Below, in pieces: positions 5,992 through 20,900 of a DNA stretch of 64,000 nt (position 1 is the first letter of the stretch; each line of letters begins with the position of its first letter). Source of the stretch: Oculina patagonica (taxonomy: Eukaryota); the NCBI RefSeq assembly GCF_052425735.1, contig NC_135763.1, forward strand, positions 35,712,001 through 35,776,000, written 5' to 3'. Under the pieces are notes generated by a model. That model searched no databases, was not told the origin of the DNA, and worked only from the letters and a program-made list of their open reading frames with translations. Made by a program: the position numbers and the translations under genes.

Positions 5992-8900
5992 CTAGGAACC
6001 TGTAAATAAGCATTGAAAATTAATTAAATATTCATGCGGGTGCAAACCAATCCCAGTACCATATTCAGATCACATGTACACAACTGTAAACCCCAATACA
6101 AATCAAACAATAGAATAACTTTTGATACAAACTCCTGCTCAGCTAATTAGTATTCATTAACTTTTGATACAGATCTGTACCGATTCGCATAACAATACTT
6201 CGCATTCATTTATTTTTTCATTTCAAAGTAGAATAAAATATTTGCGTCCGATCTGTATGGGCGAGAGGGCTCGCCAGTCGGCTCGCCATTGTAAACGCCC
6301 ATACTGATCTCCTACTCATATTTTATCTACTACGTAAATGTGTCTCTTGATTAAGATTGTCGTCAAGGTTAATAATTGGTGTTTTTTAACAGAAAATTTA
6401 AACAAGAAGGATTGATGTTTCTAGAACGATCATGCAAGATCTAAGCTATAGGCGAAGAAAAATTGTCAAAATTTGTTTTTCTTTTGTGATTTTTAAAAAT
6501 GTTACTCTGTGGCAGACTTTTATGACCAATTTAATATATATTTGAAAACATAACAGGCAGCTATTTGTCTCAGGAAAAGACATATTTCAACGAAAATTTG
6601 AATTTAAAACTGCTCTGTTTAGTTTTTCGATTTTGTCAAGAATATTGGGCAAAGGTCTATAGAATGATCTATTAGAAACTTCAATTTTGTCTTTCAGCCT
6701 TTCCTCTGTGTTATACAAGGGATGTTAATGGAAAGTGTGAAGTGTTTATAATTCATTTTCAATTTATTAAATAAAGAAAGCAAAATAGTACAATGTGTCA
6801 CGAAACTGTTAAAGATTTTCTGCTTTCGCCTCGAAACTTAAGGACAAATATTCTCCCGACCCCCACCCTCACCTTCCTTCATCTCGAAAACATTTTGTTT
6901 AAGAGGTAGTCTCTTGTCTAAAAATTAAATAGGAGGAGGGAAAATATAAACTCTTTTTTAAGTAGATATCTTTAAAAGTGCTCTCTTCACACGAAATGTT
7001 TTTCCTTTCATTTTTGACCGGGATCGCAATCAGGAAAAAAAGAAAGAAATTAGGCATCTATCGTGTCACACTGAGCAGTTTTCAATTGAGTGTCGTAAAA
7101 CAAAAACCAAAGTAATTACTCTGGCCAATACTTTCGACACTCAAGTGAAAACCGCTCTATTACATAAATTCAAAATATAAATTCAAATGCTTACCAATGA
7201 CAAGTGCGGCCACCTTAACTGGATCGTAACCATTCAGATTGTGAAGTTCTTTGATGCACACTTGAAAGCCGGTAGTAGTAATTTGCTTAGAAAAAAAGAA
7301 GCAAAATAAAAATGTCAGTCAAAAAGCATTATGATCAGGAATAATCATATTTAGAAATAGAGACGAAATTAAAAAATCTGCCATTCACACGACACACTTA
7401 GATGACTAACGATCGCATAATCCAAAAAGTTGGTACATTGAACTGGTTCGTGCATGTCGTGATTGTGTAGAATTGAATTTTACACACCTCTACCCAGGAT
7501 GCAATGCTGTTATGCTCGGGAATCAGTCGACCTGTATATCCTAGTTTCGGATTGAGGTGAGACGCTGACACAATGACTGTGGGCGTTGAAGTCTTGGGCG
7601 TTGTAAAATTTACGACCTGTAAAATAAATTAAAAATAAAGTTACATGCATTTGATCTATTTGAAATTCTGGGTAAAGAGATAATATCTGATTTTGATTTT
7701 TTTCCTGAAGAAAGGATTTCTGAACTGATTAACTAAATTCGTCGCTGAAAAAAAGGCATCAGAGCTGTACATATGTCTATTGAATGAAAGTTCTGAGCAA
7801 TAGTAGTGAAGCACGTAAGATTTTTACCTTGCAGTAAGAATTGTAGTCCTCGGCACGTGGTAGAGCATCATTCTTGAAGTCGATGAGAGTTTTCTCAGCG
7901 GGGAAATTAGTTGGAAATTTGTCATAAACGAACCAGTTCTGCAGTAAAGCAAGAACGCAACATTTGGTGAAAATTATTCGGGAGCTTAATAATGAAACAA
8001 CTGTTTTTAAATTAGTGGCGATCTATTTTAAAACAATAAACTTGGTCAATATTAGGGATAAAACGGATAATTGAAAATGTAAACAAAGAAGGAACAGTTT
8101 TTTGAAGTGAAGATAATGAATTAATATTTATTTCCGCATACGCCGTATATTTCGTAGAAAATGGTACTTCGAGAGTAAAGTGATGACGAAAAACAAGGGC
8201 CCAGGGCTAGGCTTGCTTTCTCAACCATAAGAGAAACGCACTCAATTGATCGTTACCCTTTGTCTCTGTTTCAAAACGAGACTAAGTGCGAAACCATTCA
8301 TATAAAAGCCAGCAAAGTCCATTTTTATGCAAATCAAACTTATGTTCATTCGAATGGTTTCGCATGTAGACTCGTTTTAAAACAGAGGCAAAGGGTAACT
8401 CGAAAATGGCCTAATAAAATGTCTAAAAGTCAAGCCGTGTTTATACGAGCAATTTTTACTATGATGTGACAAGTTTTTATGCGCCAAGTTTGATCGTGCA
8501 GATGACATAACAATATTATTTGTCGGCAGTTCAAAGTTTAGCGCGCCATTAATGATCTTGCATAGCAATATATTTAACTCTTCTTTTCTGTGACGAGTCG
8601 TCAAGGATACACGAGTACTTTTTCGTATGAGACAATTTTTATTAGTAACATAAAAGCTGACACGCCAGCTTCTCGGCAAATATATTTGTCACATAAAAAT
8701 TGGCCATTTTTCTCATATACAGGAGCAAATAAAAATTGTCACATAAAAATTGTCTTTAGAATCACACAACCAGGTTATCTCGAGGTATGTTCTATGGGTG
8801 AGATAGCATGACGACCTCACTTCGACCCATTCGTCACTGTAAATGGCATTTGTTTTGTTACAACTTACCAGTTTAATGTTTTCATGTAATCCATCGAAGT

Positions 8901-17900: not shown

Positions 17901-20900
17901 CAGCAATTGATTTGATGTGAAGTTTTGATCCTAATATATCACACTCCAGCGCACGGATAAATGTTTTCCTCTTTTTACGGCCTGTTTGATTTTTGTCGGT
18001 GAAGGCTTTCCTACCTGTCCCACATATTTTCCCATTATTTGCAACAACGATCCCGAAGCAGGCCAGAAAATCTGCTTTATAAGAGCCTTGCCACACACAA
18101 AACACTTTTGCTTAGCGAAATGTACGTCTATATTAAATTATGTGACGATAAACAGTACAAAAAACAAAGTTTGAATCTTCCGCGCCATTTTTATTCCCAA
18201 GATCACGCGGTCTTTGTACAGCGGTTGCACGCATGCGCACGCAAAATGCCCTCCTGCTCCCTGCATCGATGTTATTAATTATTACATAAACTGCAGTGGT
18301 ATAGCGAGTAGTAGCAAATCGATAAAAATGGTATCACACGTGTGGATAAAAGTGATATCGACACCTGTGTGATATTATTTTCGTCCAATCAGCTCGCAGA
18401 GTTTGCCATGTTTCAATGCACAATGAGCCAAAGTTTATCGATATTAAGTTGAAACATCTTCGGATCTTCCGCGGCAATCTTCGGTTATCTTCGGAAAAGT
18501 TCGGACAATTTTCGGAACATTCGTACGACCTTCTGACAGCCTTTTGAATATCTTCGGAAAATGGTCGGACCTCTTCGGAAAATCGTCAAAAACATCGTAA
18601 TTAGAAGTTTTATATATTAAACAGCATAATACATGGTTGTTTGGATATATGAAATTTATCTTCTTGTGTTCAAAACCGATATCTCACTCGTTCGCTATGC
18701 TCACTCGTGAGATCATTTTGAACACTTGAAGATAAATTTCATATCTACGCACAATCATGTATTGTCCTCTATATATTTACTTTACCTGTGGAAAATTTTC
18801 AAGAATGCATTTAGTTCCTGTGGTCCACATTGGAATGCTCACTGTCCTCTCAAATGCGCCATTTGAAACAGTTTGATAGGCAAGCCATTGTAAAGAGACA
18901 GTCCTGGTTCCAGTAATCGCACCAGAAGTTGCAACACATCCTGTAAAACTAAAAAAAAAACCAGCACATTAAACTACAAGAACGGTTTCTGATAATGTGC
19001 AGTCTGGCAAAGCAAGGGCATTACCACCGGTCAGCCCCACCAATATTGGATGGCTTCAAATGGCGGCGGACGTAGATGGATAGTGTACAAGTCAACCCGG
19101 GACCATGGCGTGAATTCACAGACGAGCTCTTCGAGTATTTTTCGATTATTTGCAGAAATTATTCAACAACCCCAAAACCTCGACGAACAACTGAAAAACC
19201 TTTGGATGACGACAAACTCCCAGGTCAGTGTTTTCATGTCTGGCCAACAACTTTCGTGGAAAAGAAAAAAAGACTAAAAAAATTTTAACCAAAAACGGAG
19301 AAAAAATTGGATTACCAACTGACCAAGGTTTCATTTTCTAACTCAGCCATGTTAGCAACAATTACTGAGGACAATGTCCAGAAATAAGAAAAAAAAAATT
19401 GTTCTTAAACCAAACAAAGCCCTGAATTCTATGCTCCAACCAAGATTAATTTTTCGGCGGCGACCATGTAAAAGACCACGTTTTTCTGATCAGATTAGAT
19501 AGCGTTCTGGAAAGCGTGCAGTACAGTGAAGATTTTTTGTTCGGTTCCGTCATCTTACTTAAACTGTCTTTGAAAACAAAAAGTTACGTTAAGTGGAAGT
19601 CTTCTCGACATTCGGGAAATATTATTCCAACTCGATTCTTGCAAATGGAAATTCAATTAACATGCAATTTATCTAATGTGCGATTTGCATCGTAATCTTA
19701 AAATCCGTCTCAGTGGTGACTACCTTATTATAGGAATATAACGTGGCGTTCTGGTCAAATGCTTATAGTAAAAAAGTTAACATACATAAAATTAACGCGA
19801 ATTTTTGAAATTCGCGTTAATAACATGTATCGTTAATTTCCTATAATAAGGTATTTTTGTTCGCCCTTTACAATCAACATTCGATTGACCACTGGAGCAA
19901 CGACTAGCCTATTTTTCCATTGAAGATTCTTCTGATTGTCTTTCGCTCTATCGGGAAAGAAATACTTTCTCGGAAATTAATGAGGGTGATAAAGGGTCGT
20001 CTGGATCACGTTTCACACAAAAAAATGCCATTTCACGTCACACAAAACGAAACAGCCATTTCACGAAATTAAAATAAAACTTGTTAAACCTCCTATCGGA
20101 ATAGAGTCGACTTGGGGCCAAGAATTACGATCAGTCACGCTCATGCACTCGGGTCAATTTGTTTTTAAACGCTTACTGGATAATTTTTAGAAGGAAGGGA
20201 AAATTACGGTTTACAGTCACATTTTACGAAAAAAAACAACGGGCATTTCGCAATTCTCGTGAAAAAGTCTATTCACGATTCACACGGCGCGGCTATGTCA
20301 CCAAATCCGTTTCATAAATATCAAATTAACGGGAAAAGGCCGTTCACGGATCACTACAAAACCCTTTATAACATTTGTGGAAATTTATTGGATTAAAGAT
20401 GACTTACCCTGATTTAGACACTCCCTCGATCCAAGTTACAGCTGCATCATAAGTTTTAGATGTTAAAGCCAACTGCACACCAACTACATCCGAAGAAAAA
20501 GCTGGATTGAAGGGAAACACTTTACACTCGTAATCTTTGTCCTGAGGAACAATTATATCTCCAGATCCAAATAGCATTCCATTTGTGTCTAAAAATCAGA
20601 GAGAGAAAGAGTTATTGTCGTAATACGTGTAACACGAGTGCAGAATAGCGTAACACAAGTGCAAAGTTGTTTCAACGAATGTTTACGAATTTCCTACTTT
20701 ATGTTTTTGGCGTAATAAGACTTTAAATCGAAAATGTCTGTTTTACCAGGGCCGTAGGAAGAAGGAAGACGAGGCACTCACTTCGCCTTGTTTTGAACCC
20801 AAAATTAAAAGAAAAATACGTTTAGGTGAGAAATTAATCCCAATTAAACCTGTCAGTGACTGATTTTTCAAAATAAATACCTCATGAAAAATGCTAAAAA

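Follow-up and report, generated by a model that had tools for sequence, protein, structure and literature searches.

LePin, a lectin that the soft coral Xenia uses for catching symbiotic algae, is a secreted protein that combines H_lectin, Kazal, C-lectin and EGF domains and binds algae (10.1101/2022.12.13.520278). In the LePin literature it stands as the one lectin whose knock-down reduces coral uptake of symbiotic algae. Its authors require a C-type lectin and EGF domains for the 'LePin-like' proteins of symbiotic anthozoans, and the nearest Nematostella relatives of LePin are without C-lectin and EGF (10.1101/2022.12.13.520278). In a sister species of Oculina, LePin could not be identified by single-cell analysis (PMC12278269).

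In discoidin, an H-type lectin, the sugar is bound between one H-lectin domain and its neighbour (10.64898/2026.06.18.733164). Trimers rebuilt within one chain have been described in other proteins: the M1-M3 modules of PCSK9 as resembling the resistin homotrimer (PMC9113161), and a monomeric dUTPase as a mimic of trimeric dUTPases (PMC12524310).

Located in a 64,000-nucleotide window of the Oculina patagonica genome (NC_135763.1, positions 35,712,001 to 35,776,000; the whole stretch analysed here) are two genes of the LePin family, tandem head-to-head paralogues that carry the core cassette alone. The explanation that we favour, with a probability of about 60%, is that they encode LePin-family proteins with two single-chain pseudo-trimer lectin heads.

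The gene pair and its LePin-family relatives

Gene 1 (ACROYT_G023699, protein P0158, 670 residues) lies on the minus strand and maps at 100% identity to 14 GT-AG exons. The first-pass annotation had placed it at 7195-20588, which holds as the coding part formed by exons 2-13; the signal-peptide exon and an 8-base last exon had been missed. The encoded protein begins with a signal peptide, which is followed by three H-type lectin domains (D1-D3), one follistatin/Kazal domain and three further H-type lectin domains (D4-D6). The features are listed below, placed by mapping of P0158 unless stated otherwise.

21143..21206, minus strand: gene 1 exon 1, start codon and signal peptide (MCFLRFIASVTLSAIILGQIS)
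20408..20588, minus strand: gene 1 exon 2, the larger part of H-lectin domain D1
18786..18948, minus strand: gene 1 exon 3, remainder of D1, then the first strands of D2
16009..16170, minus strand: gene 1 exon 4, D2 core (HDAASVWAE...CLRELKNFDGAH); the best H_lectin stretch is 133-195
14817..14936, minus strand: gene 1 exon 5, final strand of D2, then a linker and the beginning of D3
14422..14544, minus strand: gene 1 exon 6, middle of D3 (DNIAITEWIE)
13032..13128, minus strand: gene 1 exon 7, end of D3 (FQVCLKDIQRYDARHDP)
11434..11652, minus strand: gene 1 exon 8, ten-cysteine follistatin-like/Kazal domain (Kazal_2 profile and structure matching)
10100..10476, minus strand: gene 1 exon 9, whole of D4 and start of D5 (mapping; spliced to exons 8 and 10 in contigs)
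8869..9036, minus strand: gene 1 exon 10, D5 core (HDAATVWVE...CSREMQNFDGLH) (mapping and spliced contigs)
7828..7938, minus strand: gene 1 exon 11, final strand of D5, then the beginning of D6 (mapping and spliced contigs)
7488..7616, minus strand: gene 1 exon 12, middle of D6 (HNSIASWVE) (mapping and spliced contigs)
7195..7285, minus strand: gene 1 exon 13, end of D6 (FQVCIKELHNLNGYDP) (mapping and spliced contigs)
5992..5999, minus strand: gene 1 exon 14, rest of the last codon (Ser) and stop (P0158 mapping alone, without reads)
23452..37857, plus strand: gene 2, LOC144658064 (P0169), 685 residues, 14 exons, three H-lectin domains, follistatin domain, three H-lectin domains (exact P0169 mapping, 100%)

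Gene 1 is transcribed, with five junctions (7285|7488, 7616|7828, 7938|8869, 9036|10100 and 10476|11434) confirmed by spliced contigs from four public runs in two studies. Gene 2 is its head-to-head neighbour and paralogue: P0169 is 39% identical to P0158, has an identical layout and the same exon structure, and resembles it exon by exon. Also present, at 22183-22272 on the minus strand, is a D1-like peptide (E 0.004). It is not a gene relic: the underlying DNA belongs to a dispersed repeat, about 200 bp long, that also occurs at 450-649 and 15735-15888.

Ranked by hydrophobicity, the top five 19-residue windows of either protein fall at residues 1-6, and the only strongly hydrophobic 19-residue window of P0158 is the signal peptide of exon 1. 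Judged by sequence, both gene products are secreted and have no membrane anchor. These features, together with several H_lectin domains and a Kazal domain, are shared with LePin. Collinear alignment of these genes with the long LePin-like relatives in O. patagonica extends over both triplets and the central domain; among the long paralogues, P0164, P0165, P0019 and P0033 have both Lectin_C and EGF, and CTLD, fibrinogen C and F5/8C modules are also found among long relatives. P0158 and P0169, in contrast, have no match to the Pfam Lectin_C or EGF profiles, and are therefore short relatives and not strictly LePin-like. Unlike LePin, they end after the sixth H-lectin domain, as do the two Nematostella proteins used as an outgroup by the LePin authors; Nematostella A7RGA2 and A7RGA3 belong to the same cluster as these genes. 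Xenia LePin is absent among the 120 relatives listed for a long paralogue, so that a 3 + 3 layout of LePin itself is inferred from the LePin-like proteins of stony corals. Neither the membership in the LePin family nor the spread of the triple module beyond corals (see below) had been recognized in the first-pass annotation.

Six H-lectin domains in three positional classes

Both proteins match Pfam H_lectin (PF09458), with 43.1 bits for P0158 and 49.1 bits for P0169 (cut-off 24). As single domains, D2, D3 and D6 reach just 19-23 bits and D1 and D4 are undetected, the D1/D4 class being the divergent one; its relationship to the D2/D5 class is found by hhalign with 99% probability (E 8.5e-18). 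Local BLOSUM62 scores between domains range from 46 to 151, compared with 23 +/- 4 (maximum 41) for shuffles. The best-matched pairs are D2 with D5 (151), sharing the motif HDAA.VW.E...C.RE..NFDG.H, and D3 with D6 (120), sharing N.I..W.E...C.K...DP. These motifs and scores confirm the initial proposal of three diverged repeats in each half, with position-specific signatures that recur in both halves and both genes.

The pairing of D1 with D4, D2 with D5 and D3 with D6 holds across anthozoans and a sponge. In a tree of the domains, D1 + D4 are grouped with support of 99/99 and D3 + D6 with 96/97, and seven label changes are needed, compared with a shuffled mean of 66. As read from this tree, the three positional classes have been separate since before the cnidarian–sponge split. 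Within the D2/D5 class (class b), eleven polar or aromatic residues are kept at at least 80% in the sponge and cnidarians.

Shared between the two halves are four phase-0 intron positions (FPQ|AFS = TFE|STN, LTV|NIL = IKL|NWF, FCK|TVS = YCK|VVN and WIE|SVS = WVE|QIT). The a-b-c triplet probably arose first and was then duplicated as a block, introns included; this block duplication would predate the divergence of the cnidarian paralogues, and probably also the sponge split.

Predicted architecture of the triplets and the central domain

The N-terminal triplet is predicted by AlphaFold2 with a pLDDT of 91.8 and a pTM of 0.91; the C-terminal triplet, seen within the full-length model, has lower pLDDT (about 55-92 per block). 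The model of D1 (residues 3-87) matches discoidin I (Z of 8.0), discoidin II (7.7), H. aspersa agglutinin (HAA, 7.3), HPA (7.1) and octocoral SLL-2 (6.2), with r.m.s.d. of 2.4-2.7 Å over 81-83 residues for HPA, HAA and the discoidins, and 3.4 Å for SLL-2. The full-length model gives Z of 9.9 to discoidin I and 9.5 to HPA, and that of D2 (residues 88-176) matches the R1 pyocin fibre knob (Z of 5.1). Profiles of the triplet, D2/D5 and D1/D4 found no H-lectin match among the sequences of solved structures; the D3/D6 profile reaches HPA weakly (E 0.22, residues 21-77). A Foldseek search of the model against the PDB gave no match at E <= 0.001.

An unbiased structural scan of the triplet model covered 48,161 solved chains. 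Whole-span matches, aligning at least 170 residues, were obtained with nine, and all nine are single chains that reproduce a trimer: the PCSK9 CHRD (M1-M3; Z of 5.0, 189 residues aligned), herpesvirus dUTPase-like proteins (Z of 4.6-6.0), and engineered single-chain C1q, adiponectin, Cbln1 and APRIL-BAFF-BAFF (Z of 3.6-4.5, 191-216 aligned). These only whole-span solved matches (172-216 residues overall) likewise encode a trimer of β-sandwiches in one chain, but their domain folds are unrelated and their sequences dissimilar (3-10% identity), and the likeness is an analogy of architecture, not a sign of family membership. On the strength of the pTM and the kind of structural neighbours, with middling Z-scores (3.6-6.0), a threefold geometry is predicted.

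Each triplet would thus be built of three β-sandwiches round a pseudo-threefold axis, forming one compact body, a single-chain heterotrimeric version of the HPA, discoidin or SLL-2 homotrimer. With these lectins it shares the domain fold, Pfam H_lectin and a predicted trimer-like assembly; it differs in having one chain of three unlike domains in place of three identical subunits, in its marginal sequence similarity (E 0.22), and in that the canonical sugar residues are not recognizably kept. The original suggestion that each half folds as a pseudo-heterotrimer is supported, at the level of prediction, as far as the compact three-domain body and its trimer-like neighbours are concerned.

The geometry has a wide distribution among predicted structures. 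With an independent predictor (ESMFold, in the ESM Atlas), a cnidarian cluster matches the triplet with a TM-score of 0.90 (r.m.s.d. of 2.4 Å over 277 residues), and bacterial, archaeal and fungal clusters with 0.73-0.77; AlphaFold DB clusters have the three-domain geometry as well, with TM by query of 0.6-0.84 for the non-animal modules. Being predicted in bacterial, archaeal, fungal and protist proteins too, the module is no coral speciality. Many of these modules carry Pfam H_lectin, but they are only 10-22% identical to the triplet, and their fusion partners are peptidases, glycosyl hydrolases, Ig-like repeats or MACPF and not, as in the coral genes, a follistatin domain. Literature searches on tandem or pseudo-trimeric H-lectins and on the Nematostella and Acropora accessions returned nothing on this architecture, and no analysis of H-lectin domain arrangement was found in the LePin publications; the occurrence of three H-lectin domains per chain across all domains of life, as seen in predicted structures, appears to be undescribed in the searchable literature.

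Inserted between the two triplets is the central domain, recognized by Kazal_2 with 25.0 bits on exon 8 alone and 21.5 bits in whole P0158 (cut-off 22.8). Its structure matches follistatin Fs12 (Z of 7.3, r.m.s.d. of 1.4 Å), ovomucoid (Z of 7.6) and the FS domain of BM-40 (Z of 6.3 over 69 residues), and the ten cysteines of gene 1 at 308-375 follow the FS pattern. Two of the ten are missing in gene 2, which has eight, and in its Acropora orthologue. The suggested role of this domain as a rigid spacer does not emerge from the full-length model (pTM 0.67) or from the AlphaFold DB model of a homologue, in which the halves are placed differently (TM 0.40, r.m.s.d. of 23.5 Å).

Putative binding grooves and function

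As the grooves of HPA, discoidins and SLL-2 lie between neighbouring domains, three unlike domains per chain would form up to three unlike putative grooves per head, to which class b, with its rich set of conserved polar residues, may be the main contributor. With putative grooves in each head, the protein would be at least bivalent. That it binds sugar, and at how many sites, is inferred, as is any activity in cross-linking or agglutination. In the weak alignment of D3/D6 with HPA (E 0.22), the domain consensus has Ala opposite the sugar-binding Arg63 of HPA, and the C-terminal Trp/Tyr region, with the pocket residues mutated in discoidins A and E, falls outside the aligned part. By analogy with alga-binding LePin, the proteins would bind glycans on microbes or symbionts.

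Were the six domains instead independent beads on a string, assembling between chains into parallel homotrimers as in discoidin, they would resemble every H-type lectin of solved structure, each of which is a homo-oligomer (PDB titles; 10.64898/2026.06.18.733164), and such assembly would be invisible to a single-chain predictor. A prediction of D1 and D3 as separate chains, meant to probe ring closure, scored 0.17 against a mark of 0.34, with no alignments and low monomer pLDDT, and weighs on neither side. A string of separate domains, named at the outset as the outcome that would speak against a trimer-like half, is nevertheless not what the N-terminal model shows, given its pTM of 0.91. Just 7 and 12 residues separate the last and first strands of successive domains (DSSP limits in the triplet model), three unlike classes have persisted over hundreds of millions of years, and the compact module is predicted by two methods in many unrelated proteins, all of which makes this arrangement very unlikely.

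Compact pseudo-trimers could also exist without binding sugar, serving as a rigid protein-binding or matrix scaffold comparable to the PCSK9 CHRD, with the sugar recognition of the family left to other modules of the long members (C-type lectin, fibrinogen or discoidin). The canonical HPA/discoidin pocket residues, which are not recognizably kept, the marginal similarity to solved H-lectins and the additional CTLD, fibrinogen C and F5/8C modules of the long relatives would all fit, and the alga-binding domain of LePin could be its C-type lectin, absent from these genes. We consider a scaffold unlikely, since the eleven conserved residues of D2/D5 resemble a functional site, and since the short form, which has no lectin module of another type, is retained in lineages from anemone to stony corals. 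A main activity in Kazal protease inhibition, the triplets serving for targeting, seems the most improbable role: the fold is indeed that of Kazal domains (Z of 7.0-7.6 to the ovomucoid third domain in protease complexes), but FS domains of the follistatin type are matched as well as inhibitors, and gene 2 and its Acropora orthologue have the cysteine loss noted above. Moreover, placing the gene 1 loop by eye on the sequence of the ovomucoid third domain puts Thr, which would be a poor inhibitor residue, at P1.

Returning to two pseudo-trimer heads, a broader and more doubtful proposal is that the a-b-c triplet is an ancient single-chain heterotrimeric recognition head, in which each groove, built of two unlike domains, would be free to evolve its own specificity, that in LePin and its many anthozoan relatives it is the cassette that reads algal or microbial glycans, and that the bacterial, archaeal and fungal modules are the same invention. 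Should two single-chain pseudo-heterotrimers form the core of the family, the triplet, and not the single domain, is the unit to study, and candidate binding grooves are to be sought between unlike domains. Genes with the cassette only are the smallest natural test objects for this idea. O. patagonica is facultatively symbiotic, and its symbiotic and symbiont-free tissue can be compared.

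Head-to-head genes for six-domain lectins

The window is animal DNA with many introns and a G+C content of about 38–41%. Six-frame translation gives fragments resembling H-type lectin (H-lectin) motifs at 7.2–20.6 kb (minus strand) and at 24–37.6 kb (plus strand), and the two sets are collinear, exon for exon. A domain search across 1.8 billion representative proteins and two further searches, these with full-length relatives, led to two proteins of Oculina patagonica, P0158 and P0169, which share 39% identity and whose genes lie head to head with start codons about 2.2 kb apart:

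Gene 1, 21206 down to 5992, minus strand: P0158 (ACROYT_G023699, 670 aa), 14 GT–AG exons, 100% identity
Gene 2, 23452–37857, plus strand: P0169 (LOC144658064, 685 aa), 14 exons, 100% identity

The interval 7195–20588, delimited in the first-pass annotation, takes in exons 2–13 of gene 1 and misses the signal-peptide exon (21206–21143) and the 8-base last exon (5999–5992). As contigs from four public runs (two studies) join exons 8–13 exactly at the predicted junctions, transcription and splicing of gene 1 follow the model; the contig sequences depart from the window at about 1–5% of positions. Three intronic stretches of gene 1 (8238–8535, 9877–10025 and 10622–10770) have summed contig depths of 600–6800, compared with 20–350 on exons, in all four runs, and are probably abundant repeats or transposon transcripts. 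The RefSeq protein of gene 2 begins at 23452, at a plus-strand ATG that opens a hydrophobic N-terminus (MIAILVIVIILIP..., 23452–23521), and not at a CTG proposed earlier at 21938–22093.

Flanking a central follistatin-like/Kazal domain (FS) are three H-lectin domains on either side, arranged in P0158 as follows:

N-terminal half: signal peptide, D1 (22–107), D2 (108–197), D3 (198–303)
Centre: ten-cysteine follistatin-like/Kazal domain (304–377)
C-terminal half: D4 (378–474), D5 (475–564), D6 (565–669)

The presence of three diverged repeats in each half, noted earlier from the DNA, is confirmed by inter-domain local alignment scores of 46–151, against 23 ± 4 (maximum 41) for shuffled sequences. 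The highest off-diagonal scores pair D2 with D5 (151) and D3 with D6 (120), with D1–D4 weaker at 65. Pfam H_lectin scores 43.1 bits in P0158 and 49.1 bits in P0169 (cut-off 24); D1 and D4 go undetected by Pfam, and a D1/D4 profile matches the D2/D5 profile with 99% probability (E = 8.5e-18). The position-specific signatures described for these repeats are likewise present, as class-specific conserved residues in the b (D2/D5) and c (D3/D6) classes. In the b class, ≥80% of 39 sequences keep W16, T20, T40, H43, D50, W55, E57, R69, E70, N73 and H78; conserved in the c class are N19, H53, N67, W72, K86 and D96, and in the a class (D1/D4) only W53 and E55.

Two cysteines occur in every H-lectin domain of gene 1, and because both are lost as a pair from D2 of gene 2 (27904–28068, plus strand), the sequences fit one disulphide inside each H-lectin domain. 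The gene 2 follistatin/Kazal domain (31467–31685, plus strand) lacks two of its ten cysteines, a loss common to the Acropora orthologue, and the paired losses in both domains fit the removal of whole disulphides.

Predicted fold of the triplets

An AlphaFold2 model of the N-terminal triplet (P0158 residues 22–303, 46-row alignment) has 18 strands, a mean pLDDT of 91.8 and a pTM of 0.91, with no segment below 50; it is predicted as a packed body, not as beads on a string. D1 is structurally similar to discoidin I (VIA-align Z-score of 8.0 and r.m.s.d. of 2.7 Å over 83 residues), followed among H-lectins by discoidin II (7.7), Helix aspersa agglutinin (7.3), Helix pomatia agglutinin (HPA, 7.1) and the octocoral lectin SLL-2 (6.2). 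For D1 against trimeric knobs from phage tailspikes and pyocin fibres, Z-scores are 6.6–8.8.

When 48,161 representative solved chains were scanned by structure without bias, nine rows aligned over ≥170 residues across model residues 2–282, and all nine are single chains reproducing a β-sandwich trimer:

Herpesvirus dUTPase-like proteins: ORF10 (Z 6.0), pseudorabies dUTPase (5.2), EBV dUTPase (4.6)
PCSK9 C-terminal domain: Z 5.0 and 4.8
Engineered single chains: C1q head (4.5), Cbln1 (4.0), adiponectin (3.8), APRIL–BAFF–BAFF (3.6)

Since these whole-span Z-scores are middling, single matches mean little, and the uniformity of the list is the evidence. Review articles call the monomeric dUTPase a mimic of the trimeric enzyme (PMC12524310) and ascribe to modules M1–M3 of PCSK9 structural homology to the resistin homotrimer (PMC9113161). 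Two prediction methods and the kind of structural neighbours support each half being a single-chain pseudo-heterotrimer. The three sugar sites per half that belong to the first-pass proposal are putative. We did not find this single-chain variant of H-lectin architecture described in the searchable literature.

Similar bodies occur in independent predicted structures, which strengthens the structural reading and lessens its uniqueness. A cnidarian H_lectin/Kazal cluster of the ESM Atlas superposes on the triplet model with a TM-score of 0.90 (r.m.s.d. of 2.4 Å, 277 residues), and clusters from Bacteroidota, Planctomycetota, Pseudomonadota, Bathyarchaeota and Mucoromycota reach 0.73–0.77 over 250–264 residues. 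Some twenty-five entries from AlphaFold DB clusters match with TM-scores by query of 0.6–0.84, several of them named H-type lectin domain-containing and others fused to peptidases or other modules. By these models, the compact body of three H-lectin domains is a recurrent module and no peculiarity of corals.

The full-length P0158 model has a pLDDT of 84.5 and a pTM of 0.67. Its central domain folds confidently (pLDDT 84–95) and resembles follistatin Fs12 (Z-score of 7.3, r.m.s.d. of 1.4 Å), as well as FSTL3, Fstl1, the FS domain of BM-40 and ovomucoid. The links to D3 and D4 span only about 5–7 residues and so speak against a floppy tether. However, for a relative of like layout the AlphaFold DB model matches with a TM-score of only 0.40 (r.m.s.d. 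of 23.5 Å), so the two heads may lie differently towards each other. A two-headed protein with a rigid spacer is plausible.

In discoidins, adjacent H-lectin domains of the trimer form a groove that holds the sugar site, which depends on a Trp and a Tyr (10.64898/2026.06.18.733164). If the triplet packs as in discoidins, it would have three mutually different grooves, each formed by two unlike domains, and judging by conservation the b domain is the main candidate contributor. Sugar binding by the coral triplet, its specificity and any agglutinating action are putative. The sole sequence alignment to HPA is weak, with the Trp/Tyr region outside its aligned part, and places an Ala at what we take to be the sugar-binding Arg63 of HPA.

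Repeat history and the LePin family

Built from 102 domains of 17 proteins, a maximum-likelihood tree separates {D1+D4} (support 99/99) from {D2+D5+D3+D6} (99/99), the latter enclosing {D3+D6} (96/97). The six positional labels require 7 changes on this tree (minimum 5, shuffled mean 66), and domains of the sponge Oscarella pearsei each fall in the correct class, on long branches. In about two dozen relatives, the N-terminal half can be aligned with the C-terminal half over its full length, at roughly 30% identity. Because four phase-0 introns lie at matching alignment positions in both halves (after FPQ/TFE, LTV/IKL, FCK/YCK and WIE/WVE), the a–b–c triplet came first and was then duplicated as a genomic block.

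Close relatives of genes 1 and 2 are all annotated as uncharacterised. The family to which genes 1 and 2 belong, that of the H-type lectin LePin, is already known. LePin marks those cells of Xenia, a soft coral, that host algae (PMC7332420), and RNAi and antibody staining later showed that this lectin is secreted, binds to algae and initiates their uptake (10.1101/2022.12.13.520278). The LePin authors count as LePin-like those proteins that combine H_lectin and Kazal domains with C-type lectin and EGF domains, and they point out that the latter two are absent from the nearest Nematostella proteins (10.1101/2022.12.13.520278). Nematostella A7RGA2 and A7RGA3 are in the short-form cluster of genes 1 and 2 and stand beside them in the domain tree, apart from the long forms. 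Long relatives share the core of three H-lectin domains on each side of FS, followed C-terminally by C-type lectin, EGF, fibrinogen C, F5/8C and ALK/LTK glycine-rich domains, with further modules by precomputed Pfam codes; in a sponge protein, EGF and C-type lectin domains follow the same core. The long forms are a large family in O. patagonica, with about 38 of the 120 matches listed; they represent fewer loci, given the overlap among GenBank models, RefSeq models and isoforms. Genes 1 and 2 are cassette-only members of the LePin family; having the core cassette alone, whereas C-type lectin and EGF domains are required of LePin-like proteins, they should not be called LePin orthologues.

Neighbouring features

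450–649, 15735–15888 and 22119–22314: dispersed repeat of about 200 bp, copies 75–80% identical
2172–3335, plus strand: 387-aa open stretch with two N-terminal immunoglobulin I-set domains (Ig_3, E = 3e-30), then an unassigned cysteine-rich C-terminal part
22980–23361: imperfect palindrome of about 380 bp, self reverse-complement match of 73% in a 398-column alignment
42585–43346, minus strand: 253-aa ORF weakly matching (28.8 bits) the UDP-glucose/GDP-mannose dehydrogenase central domain
45275–50500, minus strand: BEL/Pao-type LTR retrotransposon with a 1504-aa ORF and, after it, one of 220 aa, G+C 0.44–0.50

Pfam identifies Pao peptidase A17, DUF1759, reverse transcriptase, integrase zinc domain and DUF5641 in the retrotransposon ORFs. 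The open stretch at 2172–3335 probably represents a large exon belonging to an adhesion-type gene nearby, and the ORF at 42585–43346 may be an exon or fragment of a UDP-glucose/GDP-mannose dehydrogenase gene. Intron 4 of gene 1 contains one copy of the dispersed repeat in inverted orientation, and another copy lies between the two genes; a weak resemblance of the repeat's translation to a D1 exon is probably due to chance. The palindrome lies immediately upstream of gene 2's annotated start codon.
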